Below, one piece after another: positions 12,671 through 42,432 of a stretch of 64,000 nucleotides of DNA (positions are counted from its first letter, which is position 1; every line of letters begins with the position of its first letter). Origin of the DNA: Podarcis filfolensis (Eukaryota); NCBI GenBank assembly GCA_964270895.1, contig OZ185447.1; one strand, written 5' to 3'. A program made the translations under genes and the position numbers. The notes beneath the pieces were generated by a model. The model was given only the letters and a program-made list of their open reading frames with translations, ran no database searches and was not told the DNA's origin.

Positions 12671-13522
12671 TATGTACGTAGCAAGGCTCAAACCCAAGGT
12701 TTCCAGTCCCAACCTGGTATCTACCAGGCTAAAGAGATGCATTGCACTCGCCGCAATGGTAAACCTGTGCCCAGGCTGCACTGCTTTGGACTGAAGTTGC
12801 AGGAATCACAACATGAAAGAAATGTTGTTTCTGTGCATGAAAGCAAATAGCTTGTCAGGGAGAAGACTATGCCTCTCCCTCAATATGCTAGCTGTCTCTG
12901 TGCAGGGACTGTTTTTGTACAGAGAACAGACCCTCCGAGTGACTCATTATTCAGGGACAATCTCGGATTTACAGAAGCTGTCCTGGTTTCTGATTTGATC
13001 CTGGAATGTCCCGCTTTTCCTTAGAACGTCCCTATTTTCACTGGAGAAATGTTGGAGAGTACGGAATAGAATGTCCCTGGGGCTTTTTTTCAGCTGGAAC
13101 TTGCCAGCACCTCTCAGAGAACGAGGGAGGTGTTCTTGGTGAGTTCCAGTACTTCTTTTCCTAGAAAAATAGCACTGGACTTCCCTATTTTTGTTGGAGG
13201 AGGCTATGTGAGAAGCATTTGCCCATGTGAGCTCCCACTTTCAATCCCAAGTGATAAAGCCCAGATACCAGATACAGTACCTAGGAAACTGCCTTCTATT
13301 GATCCAGACCATTGCTCCATGTAGCACAGTATGGTTGACAATCACCAGCAAAGATTCTCCAGGGTTTCAGACAGGGGACAATCGCAGATGTCAGAGATTG
13401 AGCATGTGCTCTACCACTGAATTACTTGGTGAGAAGTAGATCTAGGAGTCCTGTCTCGGTTTGAAGAGCAGCCATTGTGATGTTGTTTGTTTGTTTGCTT
13501 GCTTGTAACCTTTCTGTTGCAG

Positions 13523-21330: not shown

Positions 21331-23407
21331 ACAGATCTACATAAATAAAATCATTGTTATTATTGCTATATTTTCTATACTGCCTTTCATCTCAGGATCA
21401 CAGGGCAGTTTACAATTTAAAAACACAAAAATACATACCATAGATTACCCATTTCATACCACCTTTTCTGTGGTGTCATCCCGATTGTGGAATGCTCTCC
21501 CCAGAAAGCCTCACCTGGCACCATCTTTACATTTCTTACACTACTAGGCAAAAACATTCCTCTTTACCCAGGCCTGTGGCTATTAAATAACCTATGGCCT
21601 GTAACAGTGTGGGGGAGAGGACTGTTATGATGGTGATGATTTCATTATTAGGCTGTCCGTCAGTATGCTTTTTACTATGTTTTTATCTTTGATGTTCTGT
21701 AATGTGCTTTTAAAGTTGTATACCACCTCAGGATCTTTTGATAAAGGACGTTATATAAATCAAACAAGTAAAAAATAATAACAACAAAAATAAAAAATGC
21801 CCCTGCTCACTTTGCTCACCACCCACCCCATCTCTGCCAAAGCCACCCTTATGCTTTACATCTCGCCAAACTTCTGCTTGCAGACTTGGGCCACCTGTTT
21901 TCCTCCTCACGGGCCTCTATCTCCAGTTCCCTCCTTTCCTCTGATGCTGTTGCAATGGCCCAGCAGAGCCCAGTTTTTCACCACACTGCAGTTCACAGCA
22001 GCACCTGTTGGCGGCCACACAGACTGCAGCATGACGACATCCTTAGGAAAATATGTAATGGGAGAGAAAAGCACTTTGTAACCTCAATACTTTTAAAATG
22101 GAAGCAGAGTACCAGAATGCAACATAAAAACTGGCATCTGGTTGGCCACTGTGAGAACAGGATGGTGGACTAGAAGGGCCATGGGCCTGATCCAGCAGGA
22201 CTTTAATCATGTTCTTGTCTGTGAAAATAATGCGATAAAATTATATGTGATAAAAAAAAACCAGAAGAAGGAAGGAGGGAAGTCAGTGCTTGGGAGCAAG
22301 TATAAATGTAAAATGCAACACACTATGTGTATGTGGAGTATGTAACCGGAAAACTAATAAAGATTATTTTTGGGGGGGGGATCATGTTCTTGTCTGAGCC
22401 CCATAATACCTTACAATGCCAAAGTCGGCTGCATGCTGTGTATCAACACTGTAGTGTCTGATCCTGCATTGGTTTTAAAAGCTGTGTGTCTTGTTGTTAA
22501 AGCTACCCTCCCCTCCCCAATCCCTGTAGTTCTCCTGTAACATTGTCCTCATACTTTACATGCTTTACAAAATGAACTTCACCACCTGCAGCATAGCACG
22601 CTGTCTAAAACATGGCATAGTAGGCTGTCAAATGCATGACACCTGGGAGCAGAGCATCCCATTTGTACCCATTCCTAATCCTGATTTTACTGGGGCATGG
22701 CAAATGTGAATCCCCCTTAGAGGAGAACATGTTTAATCCCACCCTACCAAATTCCTCTTGCAAATTCCTCTGAGACTATTCTTCCCTCCTAAAGTTGGGA
22801 AAGGAGGTGAGTTAATGGGCAGTGGGAGGCAGGGAGAGTTAAGTTGTGTCACACAGACACACAGACACACAAACACACAAACACACACACCCCAGCCTCC
22901 TGCAGTTGTTCCCATGGTATGGTCTGAAGGCACAGAAGGTTGCCACCTTGCTGAAGCTAAGCAGATCTGTGCCTTGGATGGGTGATTGCCTGAGAACCAC
23001 ATGCCTGGAAAAACACGCTGATGCCACTTTGGGTTCTATAAAAGAAGAAAACTGGAATATAAATGTATAGTGTTAAAAAAAAAGTTATCCACCCTATCTC
23101 CCCACATTACTGGTGTAAGACAACCATGAGGTTTGGCAGCACTGGCTGCCATTTTCCCCCTATAAAACCATCCTTAAATGTGGGATTGGCTGTAGCCTTG
23201 CACCATAGGGCTTGTCTTAACTAGTGGGACATTACTGGGGTTTCAGAGGTGGAATTGAAGTCTGGGAGGAATCTCCAAAAGATGGCACTTTGTCCTGGAT
23301 CTTAGGCAAGTCAACTTTCAGGGGGTCCTGGTTTTTACTTTTTGAAATACAGCAACCCTATCTTAACTGAGTATCTTATTCATAGTTAATATTCCCCATA
23401 CCTAATA

Positions 23408-24040: not shown

Positions 24041-26359
24041 AATAAATGAGATCCTTGGACAAGAGGGTGATACATGTTAGTTCATTTTGCTGCAGTTTGT
24101 AACTTTCTCCCCCCCCCCCCACACAACCCTTTAGGTTTATGAGGGAAAATGGGCTGCATCCTGCAGGCTGAGTTTCAGAGGAGTTGGCAGAACTGCTTCA
24201 CCCAGACCAGAAGTCTCCTGTTTCCTCTGCAATCCACACCACTTTCCACGTGCTGGATGCTCTGCCCTTTGGTCACGTTGGAGGGGTTTGTGCTGTTATG
24301 TTAGGAAGTGGTCCCACGTGGAGGGGAATGCTTTAAAAATAAAATTGGGGAGGGAGGAACAGCACACAGAGCAGGCAGTTACCACCTAGAAGGTTGTGCG
24401 CTTGGTTGTGTATCTGCTAATCTGCCAGGATTATCTTTTTATGGTTTATTTCATGGCCTTTGGAGACAACCGCTCTGGCCCCCCCTACTCACCTGCCACC
24501 CAAATAAACAAACATGCAGTTTGCTTCTCCGTCCAGAAAAGGACACACTGATAGTCCCCTGCCAAGTCCTTATTCTATTTTTAAAGCTCAGTCCCATTTA
24601 AAGACCAAGGCGAGAGAGAGATGGGAGCATCTTTCCAAATACAGAAGTACAAGAATACTTTTAAATCAGGGGAAGCTGATAAGAATGTGTGCTTGGGAGA
24701 AGGGAAGGCTCTGCTCCAGTTATTAGAGGTCAACAGTTAATGGGGTGGTTGGTGGTGGAGGAGGGGGGCAAACCCTGATAAGGTGTATTATTGAGTAATC
24801 ACCAAAATGTCTATCATGATGGCCTGAATGTTTGAAAAGGTTATTTGTTTATTTGGGGGGGGGGATAAACAAACTGCCTCGACTGCTCCATTTCAGACCA
24901 CAGGTGTGTGCTCTCATCTGCAGGTCCTCTTTCAAAGGCAAGATTCCCAATTTGCATTTTTCAAAACAACACCAGATCCTCCATGTGTCCCTTTTTTCCA
25001 GGGATAGTCCCAGATTTACAGAAGCTGTTCCAGTTTCTGATTTGATCCCGGAATGCACCACTTTTCCTTAGGATGTCCCTATTTTCACCGGATAAATATT
25101 GGAGGGTATGGAGTTATGCAGGCCCCGAGCCAAGGAGATAAGTGACTATACAAACTTCTAAAGGCAGCCCTGCATACGGAAGTTTTTTTTAGTGTTTAAT
25201 GTTTTATTCTGTTTTTATATATATTGGAAGCTGTCCAGAATTATTATTATTAATAACAATGACAATGACAATGACAATGATAATAAACAGGACATCCCTA
25301 CTTTCATCAGAGGAATGTTGGATGGTATGCAACATTGAAATTCACACTTCTCTGAATTTTGCAGTGTGGCTCTCCAGCTAAGAAACATGTACCAAAAACA
25401 CACACGCAAGCTGGGATAAAGTGTGCAAATAAATGCATATGATAGTGAAAAGAACATACAAACTGTGTTGTATGAAGGGGAATTGCTTGACAATACTGTG
25501 TATGTAAGGCAAATTTGCATGCAAAGCTGTGCGCACCAGGGGAAATTCTCGTTAAAATGCTAATGAATTTTCACAAGGTCTTTTTAAAACATTGCCAACG
25601 GATGTGGAAAATGGGATTTAAGACTGGGAAAACTGGAAAAGAAAACGCTACTTTCTGCTGTCTGTTCCTTTTTTGCAGCTGTAGGAAGTCGGTGGTCTTC
25701 AGCCCTTTCAGATGCTGTTGGGTTTCACCTTAGACCAGACCGTGGCACAGCAGTGGGTCCTGACCCCCCAGCGTCCTAGCTGACAGCATCTCTTTTGCTC
25801 TAACCCTTCAGCAGTGCCCCCCTCCCCCATATACCGTATATAAATAGTATTCAGGAATCCTGGCTCTGAGCCTGCCAAATCACACTGTCTTCCCAGTAGA
25901 ATTGCTAGAAGGATTTGGCAGCCTTGTTGGTTTTGGGTTATATAAGTCCCTCCTGGCCCACTCCATACCTTGTACCATTGCCAAATGCCCTGGCCCTTCT
26001 CTGGCATCACGAACCTGGCCCAAAGGCTTGGATTAGCTGTCCCATCCCTTTCTCCTCCCACTGCAGGGTCTCGCCCACATCCCCAAGGGGCCAGATCACC
26101 AGGCCTGCCCCGTTATGCCCGTCATCCTAGTGACCTTGGGCTCCTCACAGGCAGAGACATGTGAAGGCTGGGCTGCAAAGGGTAGCCCGAGCCTGTACAT
26201 ATCAGGCTATCTTTGGGGTCGGTCGCCAAGGTCTGCCCTAACTTTGGTTACTGTTTGTAAGAGACAGTTTGGCTTCGGAGGTTGCTAAGGAAGGGGGGAG
26301 CTTGTGCATGGAGTGGGATGGTTATTATCCGAGTACAAGTGGGACCAACAACAAAAGGT

Positions 26360-30989: not shown

Positions 30990-31374
30990 TCAGCCTCTCT
31001 GGGCATCCTGAGACATGGAACGGGACAAGGAGCGGGGCAAGCCTTTCTTGAAGTCGGGGCAGGTGGGCTGGATGACCAGGGGCAGCTCCTTGGTGATCTC
31101 GGCCACAGATTTCTTGTCGAGACACACGCCAGTCGCCGGCAAGGACTCCACAGACTCTGAGGGGGTCGGGGTGAGCTCCCTGGCGCTTAGCTTGGCTGGT
31201 GTGAAGATGGGCAAGGGCAAAGGCCTCTGGTAGGGCAGGTGGTAGGAGGTCAGAGGTTCGCCCAGCAGACCCAAGCGAAGGATGCCCCATGGAGACCTCT
31301 GCACTATGACCCGGGCTTCCTGTTGCTGGCGGTAGGTTTCTCTGCGCTGTTTGTCCACTTCAAACCGAGACCAG
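30990..31374 (-). CDS. TCAP: Telethonin (titin-cap) exon 2
   Basis: cag|C TGG...TGA; WSRFEVDKQRRETYRQQQEARVIVQRSPW...YQRPLPLPIFTPAK...LPRSLSRSMSQDAQRG*. Confidence 0.96.
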
Positions 31375-31489
31375 CTGCGGAGAGAAGGAGTGGAGAATCA
31401 ATCATAGATTCACCCCACAGCTCAGTTTCAGGCAGGGGTGCCCAAACTTTTTTTCTTTTTTTTCCTTTTAAAAAAAACTTTTTATTAAG

Positions 31490-31920
31490 CAATTTCAACA
31501 TAACAAATTATCAAACCATATAATCACATACGTTATTTTTTCCTTTTTCCCTCCCTCCCTCCCCCCTCCCTCCCCCCTCCCACCAAGGACTTACCTCAGC
31601 TCCTCTCTCTGATTTCTCTGCACATATTATTCTCTGCATGTTATAAAATTATACATATCCTTACCTTATCTATCTATCATGTTCTCAACCAATAAATTTG
31701 TGTATGTTTATTCAAAACCTGCCAAGGAGTCCAGTTCATTTTGTTGTCTTTTTAGATAATTTGTAAAAAGTTCCCATTCTTCCTTAAAGTCACAGTTGTC
31801 CTTGTCCCTCAGTTTGTATGTCAGTTTAGCCAACTCTGCATAGCTCATCAGCGGCAAGAGTCTTGATAACACAAGGATGGAAGAATGAGGAAATCCCAAC
31901 AAACTTTTTTCAAAGAGGGC
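31490..31920 (-). mobile_element. L1-like LINE 3' end in the TCAP intron
   Basis: Minus-strand ORF2 C-terminal relic SYAELAKLTYKLRDKDNCDFKEEWELFTNYLK followed by a G-rich 3' UTR. Confidence 0.7.
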
Positions 31921-33040
31921 CAGATTTGGTGAAGTGAGCATGTGTGAGGGCCAACCAGAGTTGTTGACCTTTTTTTAGGATTGAAGTTCTTGAGCTTTTT
32001 TGGGGATTTTACCCCAAGAAATAAACTTCCACAGGGGAAGGATTAAAATGACTGGCAGGCCAAATTAGGGCCCGCAAACGGATTTTGGACATGCCTGCAG
32101 CATCTTCAGGTGGGGCTGTGAGAGACCTCTGTCCGAATCCCTGGAAAGCCACTGCCAGTCCCTGCATACAGTGCTAAACTAGATGGCCCAATGGTTTTTA
32201 TTCAGTTTAACGCAGCTTCCTAGGTTCCTATGCTCTTCTTTGCTGATAAGGTTGACAAGCAGAGACTAGGCAGCCATCTAACAGTGATGCCCTAGCTGCA
32301 TCCGGTGTTACAGATCCCGCACTGAGCAACACCTCCTTCTGTTATTCTATGCACCCCAAAGCCCCCTCTCCCAGCCTTAAAACCCCACACACCTTACCAT
32401 CCCAGCCCTAGCCTGGCAAATACGATTAGACTGCTTCATACCGGGAGAAATACTTTCTCCCCTGATTTCATACTCATACAAGTGTGATATCCTTGCAAAG
32501 GGTTAGAAAGGAAAGGGACAGATTAACTGGAGGGCAGATGTAGCACTCAAAACCAAACCACCACAACTGCTAAAAGCAGACACTCTGCTTTCATTGTCAG
32601 AGGTGAGCGATGCAGTGGCCGCATTTGCTGAGGGCACCAAATTATTCAGAGCGGGGGAGAAAGCAAACAGCGCCTGGAAATTAGCTCTGAAAGGATGTCT
32701 AAAAGCTGAGTGAATGGGTAATGAGATGTCCAATGTGATGCACACTGGGGCAAACCCCCCCCCTAACTTTATACACTGATGGGGCCTGAGCTGTCTCCCC
32801 CTGCCCTTCCTCTTTGACATGTCTGGCACCTCCAAGACTTGACTGTATCATAGAACCATAGAGCTGGCAGGGATCCCAAGAGCAATGCATGTTTAACCTC
32901 TCCCAATACTTGGCTTTATCTAGGCTTCCTTGGGAGGACCCAGCCAGTAGACTTCTGTAACAAATACAAAGCCGCCTGGCTGGATTATAACAGTTTAGAC
33001 CAAGCCTATCGTCCCCACCAGACCCAAGCCCAACACTCAC

Positions 33041-33189
33041 CCTTCCTCAGGCCTAGCGGTGAGTGAGAGGTCCTTCCATTCCGCACTGAAGGACTCCTTC
33101 CGGGATGTGTCTCTTTCGGATACCTGGCAGCTCAGCTCTGCTGCGGCCAGGTTCCCTGAGCTGCGAAGGACCACGCTCTTTCCGTGCAT
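33041..33189 (-). CDS. TCAP: Telethonin exon 1
   Basis: ATG...GG|gtgagt; 149 nt, phase 2; MHGKSVVLRSSGNLAAAELSCQVSERDTSRKESFSAEWKDLSLTARPEE(G). Confidence 0.94.
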
Positions 33190-33272
33190 TGTTGCGTCTG
33201 GGCTTCTGCTCGAACTAGGATGCGTTCTCGGAGTCTCCCTTCGGTCTAGTCTATTGTCCCTGCTGCGGGTGA

Positions 33273-33280
33273 TTTATATA
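33273..33280 (-). promoter_or_regulatory. TCAP TATA box
   Basis: TATATAAA on the minus strand about 85 bp upstream of the ATG. Confidence 0.65.
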
Positions 33281-33842
33281 GGTTTCCTGAATGCCGATTC
33301 CAGAGGGGTTGGCATTCAGAGCTATATCGGTCTTGCAAAGTCACCGGTGGAGCATTCTGATACCGGACACCTCCCCTCCCTTCCCCCTGGGTGCGTTTGC
33401 TACTGGAAACCAAATGTGTGACGTGACAATATTTTTAATACATTTTTAACCCTGTCATTTCCTGGCAGCAGCTTGTGGCTGTTGATGGGTCGTTTCATTA
33501 ATTTAGCATGGAAGATCAAAACATGCACCATTCTGAGATGGGAGCTGGAGAGAAGCTGTAGAAATAATGTTTGTTGCCATTTAATTTGGTGCTTCCATTC
33601 TGGGCCCACTGGAAGCCAAGACACAAGGGCTTCTTTTGATTCTCAAGAGGGATATCGGGTCGTTGCCAAGAGAAATATCTCTTTCAGTTGCTGAGGCTTA
33701 GCCCCACAAACATATGAGGCACTCTCCCTTTGCAGTTTTCAACAACGGGTCTGTCACTGTGAGAACAGGATGCTGGTCTAGATGGGCCTTTGGCCTGATC
33801 CTGCAAGTTCTCCTTATGTTCTTATGACTGCTAAATAGAAAT

Positions 33843-33922
33843 GAATAAACAATAATAAATAAATAAATAAAAATAAATAATAAATAAATAAATGATAATA
33901 AATAAATGATAATAAATAAATG

Positions 33923-33972
<50 letters not shown>

Positions 33973-34010
33973 AATAACAAATAAATAAATAAATAATAAA
34001 TAAATAAATA
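33843..34010 (+). repeat. Compound (AAT)n/(TAAA)n microsatellite among CR1 fragments
   Basis: Direct reading; CR1-like pieces at about 33755-33830 and 34020-34140. Confidence 0.9.
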
Positions 34011-34161
34011 GAAGCATTACTGCCTCTTAACTGTGGAGGCAGGTCATAGCGACAGCTTTCGATAGCCCTCTCCTCCATGAATTTGTCTAATCCTCTTTTA
34101 AAGCTGGTGGCCGTCTCTGGCTCCTCCAAATATTGAAGCCATGGCAGTATTTGACAGTCAG

Positions 34162-34848
34162 CACACAGCGGTATATGCAGTAGTTTATGCAGCATGACAC
34201 TGTTGAATAGAAGTCGATGTCTAGTATTTCACAACTTATGGGTCACTTGTCAATAGAACCAAGTCACCAATGTCTAATGCAGTGGGAAGTTCGCAATTCC
34301 TCAGTGGCAAGAGGAGCGTGTATGGCATACCCTCCAACATTTCTCTGATGAAAATATGAACGCCCTAAGGAAAAGCGGGACATTCCAGGATCAAATCAGA
34401 AACTGGGATAGATTCTGTAAATCCAGGACTGTCCCTGGAAAATAGATACACTTGGAGAGTCTAAGATCTGGATTCTAATCTTTGATCAGCAGTGGATTTT
34501 ACTTCCCTTGTATCATCTGTAAAATGGGAATGTGTTTAACTTCAAGGGTAAGTAGTGATTTCGAAGGAGACTGAGCATTTCATGTGAAATCTAGTTGATT
34601 ACTACGGAAAATGCAAATGTTTAAGCTCCCTGCTTTCTCTTGATCACTCTTCATCTCAGATGGGATGGTTTTTTGAGAAAACACTTGGTTGGCGGAAGAA
34701 GACTGCAGTGACATGTGGCCTCATCCATGTTGATAAGGAGAACGCTTACCGTTATGATCTCATGTGCTGCAGGGATACTAATTTCTGTAATGTACATGAC
34801 CCTGTATATGATCTCATAGGTCCCTACAATGTCACTATGCTGACATGA
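34162..34848 (+). pseudogene. PATE/Ly6 (LU-domain, three-finger) gene relic, two exons
   Basis: Segment A gives C-x3-C-x9-C-x9-C-x7-C after restoring one A at 34253. Segment B (strong acceptor, from 34660) gives xGMVFEKTLGW...TC-x16-CCRDTNFCN after removing one T. Confidence 0.65.
34324..34460 (+). mobile_element. MITE of the GGCATACCCTCCAAC family
   Basis: Related copies at about 12940-13075 and 24975-25110 (both reversed) and 35600-36340. Confidence 0.75.
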
Positions 34849-35701: not shown

Positions 35702-36072
35702 TTTTGAATTATGGTGCTGGAGGAGACTCTTGAGAGTCCCATGGACTGCAAGAAGATCAAACGTATCCATTCTTCAGGAAATCAGCCCTGAGTGCCCACT
35801 GGAAGGACAGATCGTGAAGCTGAGGCTCCAATACTTTGGCCACCTCATGAGAAGAGAAGACTCCCTGGAAAAGACCCTGATGCTGGGAAAGATGGAGGGC
35901 ACAAGGAGAAGGGGACGACAGAGGACGAGATGGTTGGACAGTGTTCTTGAAGCTACCAGCATGAGTTTGACCAAACTGTGGGAGGCAGTGGAAGATAGGA
36001 GTGCCTGGCGTGCTCTGGCCCATGGGCTCACAAAGAGTCGGACACGACTAAACGACTAAACAACAACAACAA
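35702..36072 (+). mobile_element. BovB LINE 3' end nested in an older element
   Basis: ORF RVPWTARRSN...LQYFGHLMRREDSLEKTLMLGKMEGTRRRGRQRTRWLD, (CAA)n tail; 11-bp TSD CATCTGACTGC at 35691-35701 and 36073-36083. Confidence 0.95.
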
Positions 36073-36880
36073 CATCTGACTGCGTTGCCCCAGCCACTCT
36101 GGGCAGCTTCCAACATATACAAAAACATAATAAAACATTAAACTTTTTTTTTTAAAAAAAGCCCTCCTCTATACAGGATTGCCATCAGACGGCTCAGGAG
36201 TCAGATAACTCCATACCCTCCAACATTTCTCTGATGAAAATAGGGACGTCCTAAGGAAAAGCGAGGCATTCCGGGATCAAATCAGAAAAGGGGGCGGCTT
36301 CTATCAATCCAGGACTGTCCTTGGAAAATAGGGTCTGTGTATGCCATCCCAGGCTCCTTGGGGGAAAAGATGGGGTACCAATGTGAAAAGCAAAAAGAAC
36401 CACATTCACACCATACATTGAAAGCACTATGTGCCACTGTAAACAGTCATGGCTTCTCCCCCAAAATTCTGGGAGCTGGAGTTTGTTAAGGGCGCTGAGA
36501 GTTGCTAGGAGAACTCTATTGCCTTCACGGAGTTACAAATCTCAGAGTTCTCTGAGAAGAGGGCTTAATAGTAAAAGCCACTAGACAGTCTCCTCTGTTG
36601 TAGGAGGAGTGGGGTGATTCGCAGGCCCCCCTGCCTCTTGCATGGAAGGGGGAGCTGTCTAACCTTCTGCCAGCAGGGCTCTTCCCTGACAAATGACATA
36701 GACCCCCCCTCCCAGCCCATCCTAGTTCCTGACAGTAATTTGGTTATACTGGATGAACAGCTTCAATAAAGTGTCCTTTCAATAGAGTTATTAAACGACT
36801 ATCCAGTGCGAGATAAAGCAATCCGTTCCCTCGCCCCCAGCATTGCCAGGACCTCCATCAAGCTCTTGGAAAGGTCTTCT

Positions 36881-40781: not shown

Positions 40782-40838
40782 TAATTGTTTATCGCCAGAT
40801 ATGATTGCACCTTAGTTCTTTATTCTCACTCCTTGCAG

Positions 40839-41049
40839 GGGAAATCTGCGGCCGCACCCTTATTGATATTGGCACAGGCCCCACCATTTATCAGCTCCTC
40901 AGTGCTTGCGACTACTTTGAGGAGATAGTGGCCACAGACTACCTGGAAGTAAATCGGGCTGAGATACAGAACTGGGTGCTCGGTGAAGACTCCAGCTGCT
41001 TTGACTGGTCCCCTTACATCCAGTATACCTGTAAGATTGAAGGCAATGG
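40839..41049 (+). CDS. PNMT: PNMT exon 2
   Basis: cag|GG...GG|gtaaga; 211 nt; SAM-binding motif LIDIGTGPTIYQLLSAC. Confidence 0.96.
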
Positions 41050-41149
41050 GTAAGAAATAAATGCTGGAGAGAGAGGCATGGGTTCCCAAGGAATAAGCCT
41101 GGGGATGCAATCATGGTTACCTGTGATCTACCATGCCTTACCTGGCTGC

Positions 41150-41303
41150 TGGCGCTGTGGTCTAAACCACTGAGCCAATTGGGCTTGCCGATCAGAAGGT
41201 CGGCGGTTCAAATCCCTGCGACGGGGTGAGCTCCCGTTGCTCAGTCCCAGCTCCTGCCAACCTAGCAGTTCGAAAGCATGAAGTGCAAGTAGATATAGAG
41301 GTA
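41150..41303 (+). mobile_element. Partial Sauria SINE (head)
   Basis: TGGCGCTGTGGTCTAAACC...GGTTCAAATCC. Confidence 0.85.
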
Positions 41304-41884
41304 CTGGCTGTGCAGTGCAGGTGACAAAGAGCTTAGCAGAGGGATGGGAAACCTATGGCCATCTAAGTATACCCATTACAAAGCACCTTTTTTATAATAT
41401 ACTGAGGTAAAACACCTACAATATATGATTACTGCGGCAAGACTGCTATACGCACAAAGACTGCTATACGCACAAAGAAAAGCACAGCCTTACCCACTAT
41501 AGAAGAATGGCTGATAAAATTATTGGACTTGGCTGAGACGGCTAACATGTTTAATTAGAGAGAAATCATTACCAACATTTGTTGAGGATTGGAAATTTCT
41601 TATGGACTTTTTGTGTGAAAGAGAAAATGACCTTGTAATATCTGGATTTGAAGATTGAAAAAATGCTGGTTTATAGAGGATAGAATGGTTGGATCTTAAA
41701 GAATAAATATCATATGTAGCTGCAGAGAGCTGGAAGTCCTTTTATTTTATCTTTCTTCAGTCCCCCCCCTTCTATTCCTTTTCTCTTTCTTTCTCCTTCT
41801 TTAGATTTCTCATATTTTCTTCCTTCTGACTTTGCTCCTTTTTAGATTCAGAAACAACTATCTGACTTTTAGAAGACATCTGGA

Positions 41885-42000
41885 GTTTTTAATGTGTGAT
41901 GTTTTACTGTGGTTTTATGATTTGTTTTGAAAGCCTCCCGGAGTGGCTGGGGCAACCTAGTCAGATGGGCAGCATATAAATAACAAATGATTATTTATTT
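41885..42000 (+). mobile_element. LINE-tail relic abutting the PNMT exon 3 acceptor
   Basis: GAGTGGCTGGGGCAACCTAGTCAGATGGG is close to the reverse complement of copies at 36073-36100 and about 46020-46050. Confidence 0.75.
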
Positions 42001-42002
42001 AG

Positions 42003-42432
42003 GGAACCGTGGAAGGAAAAAGAGCAAAAGCTGAAGAAGAAACTCAGAAGGATCCTTCCCATCGATGTCCACCAGGCCAAACCTCTAGGTTCCTCTCTCA
42101 GCCAACCAGCCGATGCTTTGGTCTCTGCTTTCTGCCTGGAAGCTGTGAGCCCTGACCGACCGAGTTTCGACCGGGCCCTGCGGAACGTCACAACGCTTCT
42201 CAAGCCTGGTGGCCACTTCCTCATGATCGGGGCTTTGGACGAGTCCTTCTATCTGGCTGGAGAAGCCAAGCTGTCAGTCGTGCCCGTCAGCGAGGCAGAT
42301 GTCAAGGAATCCTTCGCCAAGAGCGGCTATCGCACCCGCAACTTCCGCTCCTACGTCATGCCGCCGAGCCTGAAGATTGGTGTGGATGACGTGCAAGGGA
42401 TCTTCTTCATCCATGCGCAGAAGACAGCCTGA
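42003..42432 (+). CDS. PNMT: PNMT exon 3
   Basis: EPWKEKEQKL...AFCLEAVS...GALDESFY...GVDDVQGIFFIHAQKTA*; equivalents of catalytic E185, E219 and D267 present; total 266 aa. Confidence 0.96.

Follow-up and report, generated by a model that had tools for sequence, protein, structure and literature searches.

A sequence-only reading of this DNA had placed a PATE-like gene of the Ly6/uPAR (LU) three-finger kind between TCAP and PNMT. It had proposed two coding pieces, segment A as exon 2 and segment B as the following exon, and had left two possibilities: a pseudogene, or an intact gene with homopolymer errors. We know of no vertebrate that carries a three-finger gene at the TCAP-PNMT locus. The question is whether segments A and B are parts of an LU gene and, if so, whether that gene is alive. 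The window, that is, the whole stretch of DNA analysed, is 64,000 nt of one strand from Podarcis filfolensis (assembly GCA_964270895.1, contig OZ185447.1). The features discussed below are collected in Table 1.

Table 1. Positions, strands and supporting evidence of the features in and around the candidate LU region
Feature	Position	Strand	Evidence or remark
TCAP (telethonin)	30990-33189	-	exon 2 ORF 30990-31358; Pfam Telethonin, E = 3e-40
Repeat tail, then (AATA)n/(ATA)n microsatellite	33755-34013		upstream of segment A
Segment A, earlier candidate exon 2	34155-34345	+	translations; unsupported as LU exon
SINE-like interspersed repeat	34325-34462		blastn against the window; between segments A and B
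Pyrimidine-rich tract with a final CAG, retained splice acceptor	34620-34659	+	sequence; homology starts right after
Segment B, relic resembling exon 3 of a Ly6/uPAR (PATE-like) gene	34660-34848	+	phmmer, tblastn, ORF listing
T6 run, possible frame break	34669-34674	+	sequence; CAI5771091.1 residues 61-66
TGG (Trp) at the position of CAI5771091.1 Cys71, sixth Cys of the LU framework	34690-34692	+	tblastn alignment
PNMT exons, downstream neighbour	40805-42432	+	ORFs 40805-41053 and 42118-42432; Pfam NNMT_PNMT_TEMT, E = 6e-27

Position of the candidate region

Both neighbouring genes were identified by Pfam and PDB matches. Exon 1 of TCAP lies inside 33037-33189 (PDB telethonin match, E = 1.6e-9), and the PNMT ORFs match PNMT in the PDB at E = 1e-41. 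Because TCAP and PNMT are identified on either side, the candidate LU region is intergenic between these two genes, where it had originally been placed. TCAP transcription points away from the LU relic. The distance from the TCAP start codon is approximately 1 kb to the candidate region and approximately 1.5 kb to segment B. It should be mentioned that TCAP and PNMT are on opposite strands in the window. In human 17q12, these genes are presumably in the same orientation. If so, the arrangement in the window would point to a small, local inversion within this lizard lineage.

Homology of segment B to the last exon of an LU protein

Segment B encodes C-x16-CC-x5-CN and ends with a TGA stop codon at 34846-34848. 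The letters had been read correctly: the pyrimidine tract, the AG, the T6 run and the cysteine pattern are all present as described. The bare cysteine motif of segment B is not beyond chance, since 20 of 200 Markov-shuffled windows (~10%) contained one or more stop-free copies of C-x10-22-CC-x4-6-CN. Segment B was used as the query in an exhaustive HMMER search of 1.84 billion protein representatives. The sole significant relative was CAI5771091.1 from Podarcis lilfordi (UniRef100_A0AA35K4Q8, 108 aa; labelled P0001 in our analysis). Residues 2-48 of segment B and residues 62-108 of this protein are 74% identical (phmmer, E = 6.4e-16). When CAI5771091.1 was compared with the window by tblastn, 35 of 47 residues were identical (E = 2e-21). 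Because of the match to this LU protein at E = 6.4e-16, the similarity of segment B is far beyond chance. These alignments show that segment B is truly homologous to the last coding exon of an LU three-finger protein.

The homology covers 34663-34803, and the frame of segment B then runs for 14 codons beyond the end of CAI5771091.1 to the stop codon. The retained residues are a Cys at 34714-34716, the Cys-Cys pair at 34765-34770, a Cys at 34786-34788 and the following Asn at 34789-34791. From the sixth-Cys position on, segment B and CAI5771091.1 share x7, x16, CC, x5 and CN; the x7, x16 and x5 spacings first noted in segment B are confirmed. In contrast, CAI5771091.1 is a full protein that has its signal peptide and all ten cysteines, whereas segment B has Trp at the position of Cys71, a longer tail and no detectable equivalent of residues 1-61. 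The family assignment made in the sequence-only reading is correct for segment B: the relative is named UPAR/Ly6 domain-containing, has 10 Cys and possesses a signal peptide.

The sequence-only reading had proposed a profile search for UPAR_LY6 (PF00021) and toxin families as a check of the family. This check gave a negative result: segment B and both frames of segment A, searched as separate pieces against Pfam, matched no family at E <= 10. The UPAR_LY6 Pfam model often misses short, divergent LU proteins. The missing PF00021 match weakens the LU membership of segment B and does not exclude it. In the PDB, phmmer with segment B gave chance matches only. A word-index protein search gave no match to segment B, neither as the 62-aa ORF nor as the 86-aa open frame. 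These blanks carry little weight because the same search missed CAI5771091.1, which has several 5-mers in common with segment B. HMMER also matched segment B to two repeat proteins (P0002 and P0003), which were set aside as irrelevant. By exact look-up of two window ORFs in the protein collection, neither was present.

Properties of CAI5771091.1

CAI5771091.1 has a hydrophobic signal peptide and ten mature cysteines with the spacings x2, x8, x4, x7, x17, x7, x16, CC and x5, and an Asn directly follows the last Cys. Its UniRef name, 'UPAR/Ly6 domain-containing protein', was given automatically. In the ESM Atlas, the nearest clusters are C9orf57-homologue, PATE4-like and PATE14-like LU proteins with feature scores of 0.88-0.89. 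All ten of the ten best Atlas matches belong to the three-finger clan, and toxin clusters (0.84) score below the PATE and LU clusters. A structure comparison with the Atlas model (pLDDT 0.73) gave TM values of 0.74 and 0.70 to LU clusters. The PATE and C9orf57-homologue LU proteins in these nearest clusters are short, secreted, 10-Cys proteins without a GPI tail. The likeness of CAI5771091.1 to them lies in the Atlas feature scores and TM values, not in a significant sequence match. Pfam gave no family at E <= 10 for full-length CAI5771091.1, phmmer against the PDB gave chance matches only, and the word-index protein search found only the protein itself. The AlphaFold single-sequence model (pLDDT 50) was too poor, and the Foldseek PDB search from that model is meaningless. 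The evidence for the putative LU membership of CAI5771091.1 thus comprises its cysteine framework, the Atlas results and the automatic UniRef name.

CAI5771091.1 is an intact, secreted-type LU protein and the sole member of its own 90% cluster. The protein may stand for a lacertid family of PATE-like or C9orf57-like proteins that is poorly annotated. Wall lizards have a PATE-like or C9orf57-like type of secreted LU gene, which is barely covered by current annotation. One annotated protein of this type was found in our limited searches, a number that does not establish rarity. Human PATE genes are at 11q24, not beside TCAP and PNMT.

Splice acceptor, sixth cysteine and reading frame of segment B

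The acceptor AG is at 34658-34659, directly ahead of the start of the homology to CAI5771091.1. No frame upstream of 34660 resembles residues 50-61 of CAI5771091.1. Because the exon boundary and the intron end are kept, the copy in segment B is unprocessed and is not a retrocopy. The last intron is placed ten codons ahead of the sixth-Cys position and ends at 34659, as in the three-exon layout of LU genes.

The sixth cysteine had been predicted to be replaced by a TGG codon, and this codon indeed aligns with Cys71 of CAI5771091.1. In CD59, we take Cys19-Cys39 to be the core disulfide, in which the cysteine at the sixth position pairs with the fourth. To our knowledge, a core disulfide of this type is present in all three-finger proteins. 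By analogy with CD59, the TGG codon would represent the loss of a core-disulfide cysteine. The LU framework, 8-10 Cys with a final CC-x4-5-CN, is incomplete at this locus: C-x16-CC-x5-CN is kept, the sixth Cys is Trp, and no counterpart of Cys 1-5 is supported.

The T6 run was analysed by comparing the frames on its two sides by the minimum number of base changes allowed by the codons. In the four codons before the run, the frame offset by one base (G-M-V-F against G-K-V-F in the relative) gives a better fit than the as-is frame (G-W-F-F). The as-is frame across the T6 run is also open. From codon degeneracy, there is probably a frame break at the T6 run of segment B. We also considered the coding capacity of segment B. 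It has no stop over 86 codons (34588-34845) when read as is, and four of the five exon-3 cysteines and the Asn are kept in it. Given this long open frame, some constraint on segment B is possible. Downstream, neither AATAAA nor ATTAAA occurs until 36129, approximately 1.3 kb past the stop codon of segment B.

Segment A and the first exon

In segment A, the frame is open from 34155 to 34253 with four Cys and closes with TAG at 34254-34256, and the adjacent frame continues as IEPSHQC... with a fifth Cys. These letters are as had been read. Segment A is approximately 400 bp upstream of segment B on the same strand, where exon 2 would be expected. We compared segment A with residues 22-62 of CAI5771091.1 by frameshift-aware alignment. 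The score was 25, and 36% of random 190-nt tiles scored as high. The Cys spacings of segment A are x3, x9, x9 and x8 versus x2, x8, x4 and x7 in CAI5771091.1; all four differ. Cysteine-rich frames like segment A occur by chance at a rate of approximately 1 per 5 kb of strand. In the window, open frames that hold four or more Cys within 28 codons occur at 124 loci, and a relaxed five-Cys LU pattern with one frame change allowed occurs at 21 loci, 13 of which are on the plus strand. From these 13 loci, the chance of a five-Cys pattern within 600 bp upstream of segment B is approximately 12%. The similarity and the cysteine pattern of segment A are not beyond chance. LU exon 2 can evolve fast. 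We put the chance that segment A is a true exon-2 remnant at about one in three; its position is suggestive, and it has no other support.

Residues 1-61 of CAI5771091.1 gave no match above background in the 64-kb window by tblastn or by a frameshift-aware scan. For the signal peptide, no match to residues 1-22 was found in the 64-kb window, and a separate first exon of an LU gene is not seen there. This agrees with the sequence-only reading, which had named no convincing signal-peptide exon. Residues 1-63 were also aligned in a frameshift-aware manner with 33190-34660, using 106 window chunks as background. The best N-terminal alignment was at 33309-33409 (plus strand) in the region upstream of TCAP, where residues 10-43 matched in two frames (7 of 11 and 7 of 15 identical) with a score of 42. 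This match is attributed to chance because four of the 106 chunks, including that region, reach at least 42. The region 33309-33409 was rejected as an N-terminal exon, as three other, unrelated places in the window score 42 or more. The two-exon model is not supported, since segment A has no similarity to the middle part of the relative and has other Cys spacings, and no signal-peptide exon is found in the window. Of the two indels that had been assigned to homopolymers, the one in the T6 run is in such a run, and the other is at a mere AA dinucleotide in CAATAG.

Segment B as a probable orphan last exon

We consider it likely that segment B is an orphan exon 3, a fragment of a PATE-like LU gene that persists as an unprocessed pseudogene. 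The source gene would have encoded a small, secreted three-finger protein of the Ly6/uPAR family, similar in kind to PATE or C9orf57. The fragment retains the intron-derived acceptor and most of the third finger and C-terminal motif. It has lost one core cysteine and probably carries a frame break four codons in, and exons that could supply the signal peptide or fingers I-II are not recognisable in the 64 kb. The fragment most likely yields no protein and is without function. It may be what is left of a gene formerly present at this locus or a partial duplicate that was inserted here. Of the two possibilities originally left, the pseudogene holds in the form of an orphan last exon, and the intact gene with homopolymer errors is unlikely. 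The pseudogene is preferred because rescue by sequencing errors needs two indels (one of them outside a homopolymer), a Cys-to-Trp change that is not an indel and the absence of exon 1.

A live, fast-evolving LU gene would require that segment A is exon 2, that segment B is exon 3, that a signal-peptide exon has escaped recognition and that the breaks are assembly errors. The order and spacing on the same strand fit the three-exon LU layout (PMC10421932), five Cys can be read in segment A across one frame change, and the acceptor at 34659 is kept. However, segment A is at background against the middle part of CAI5771091.1, none of its four Cys spacings is like those of the relative, and its five-Cys pattern had a chance of approximately 12% of occurring so near. 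Furthermore, the first of the two putative error sites is outside any homopolymer, Cys has become Trp by a change other than an indel, the search of the window for the signal peptide gave no match, and the separate pieces have no Pfam match. We judge such a live gene to be very improbable. The chance is similarly slight that a living, lacertid-specific, fast-evolving secreted PATE-like gene is present at TCAP-PNMT, with segment A as exon 2 and the breaks as assembly errors or tolerated changes. If this were true, the gene would encode an unannotated reproductive or chemosensory three-finger protein. Segment B might instead be transcribed for another use: a transcript that is non-coding, or that starts divergently in the nearby TCAP promoter region, could include it as its terminal exon or as a small ORF. 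An ATG at 34660 is directly past the acceptor and begins an open frame of 62 codons, and the first exon and promoter of TCAP are approximately 1.4 kb upstream in divergent orientation. Because there is no poly(A) signal nearby and half an LU domain without disulfide partners is unlikely to fold, we regard this use as very doubtful.

The relationship between segment B and CAI5771091.1 has to be considered separately. Congeneric orthologues are expected to be well above 90% identical. Therefore, if the window genome is that of a Podarcis, 74% identity is far too low for the P. lilfordi orthologue, and CAI5771091.1 would be a paralogue located elsewhere. If so, the window would contain an old, incomplete duplicate or what remains of a second member of the family. 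Alternatively, CAI5771091.1 may be the true orthologue: the lizard of the window would be distant from Podarcis, both would have had the gene at TCAP-PNMT, and only the lineage of the window would have lost it. In a fast-evolving family, 74% identity would suit distant lizards, but it is not the level expected between congeners if the window genome is from Podarcis. We therefore consider the orthologue unlikely.

Comparison with LY6/3FTx genes

A standard LY6/3FTx gene has three exons (PMC10421932; Koludarov et al. 2023). The TOP1MT-linked LY6 clusters of reptiles contain many pseudogenes, orphan exons and duplicated, pseudogenised copies of exon 3, and orphan exon 3 copies and pseudogenes are common products of the birth-and-death evolution of LY6/3FTx genes (PMC10421932). 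Such remnants have thus already been described, and segment B, as a lone pseudogenised last LU exon, is the same kind of object from another LU branch at another locus. The LY6/3FTx orphan exons (PMC10421932) are within the TOP1MT-linked cluster, whereas segment B is isolated at TCAP-PNMT and belongs to the PATE-like branch, not to the toxin branch. Toxin genes of the 3FTx type descend from TOP1MT-linked LY6 genes, with loss of the GPI region, and the locus here is TCAP-PNMT. Nothing ties the segment B relic to venom toxins. In the literature, we found no paper that connects LU genes with TCAP/PNMT or with C9orf57. The relic matters little in itself, since single decayed LU exons are a usual outcome of gene-family turnover. 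It is the trace of an earlier duplication or loss in the STARD3-TCAP-PNMT block, which is otherwise conserved, and could help to date the turnover of the LU family in squamates.

Repeats around segments A and B

The surroundings of segment A are mostly repeats. The SINE-like repeat begins just past the proposed donor of segment A; other copies are at approximately 36212-36331, 24979-25110 and 12928-13061 (blastn within the window, 83-88% identity). The repeat tail in 33755-34013 has copies at 22147, 53174 and 44822 (blastn within the window). Two LINE-derived fragments, possibly of CR1 or L2 type, were also observed. One is an ORF at 35730-36059 (plus strand), which is like the C-terminal part of ORF2 and ends with ...SRTRLND. 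The other, at 34014-34120 (minus strand), is a LINE 3'-end-like stretch that encodes ...LDKFMEERAI.... Pfam gave no match for either fragment. The stretch 34480-34600, directly upstream of the segment B acceptor, contains CATCTGTAAAATGGGAAT and then a perfect-looking GTAAGT at 34548. The CATCTGTAAAATGGGAAT stretch is presumably like the core of MIR-type SINEs. An ORF at 34482-34574 contains C-x2-C-x4-C, and a splice from it to 34660 would stay in frame; as a partner exon of segment B, it is regarded as a coincidence of a repeat.
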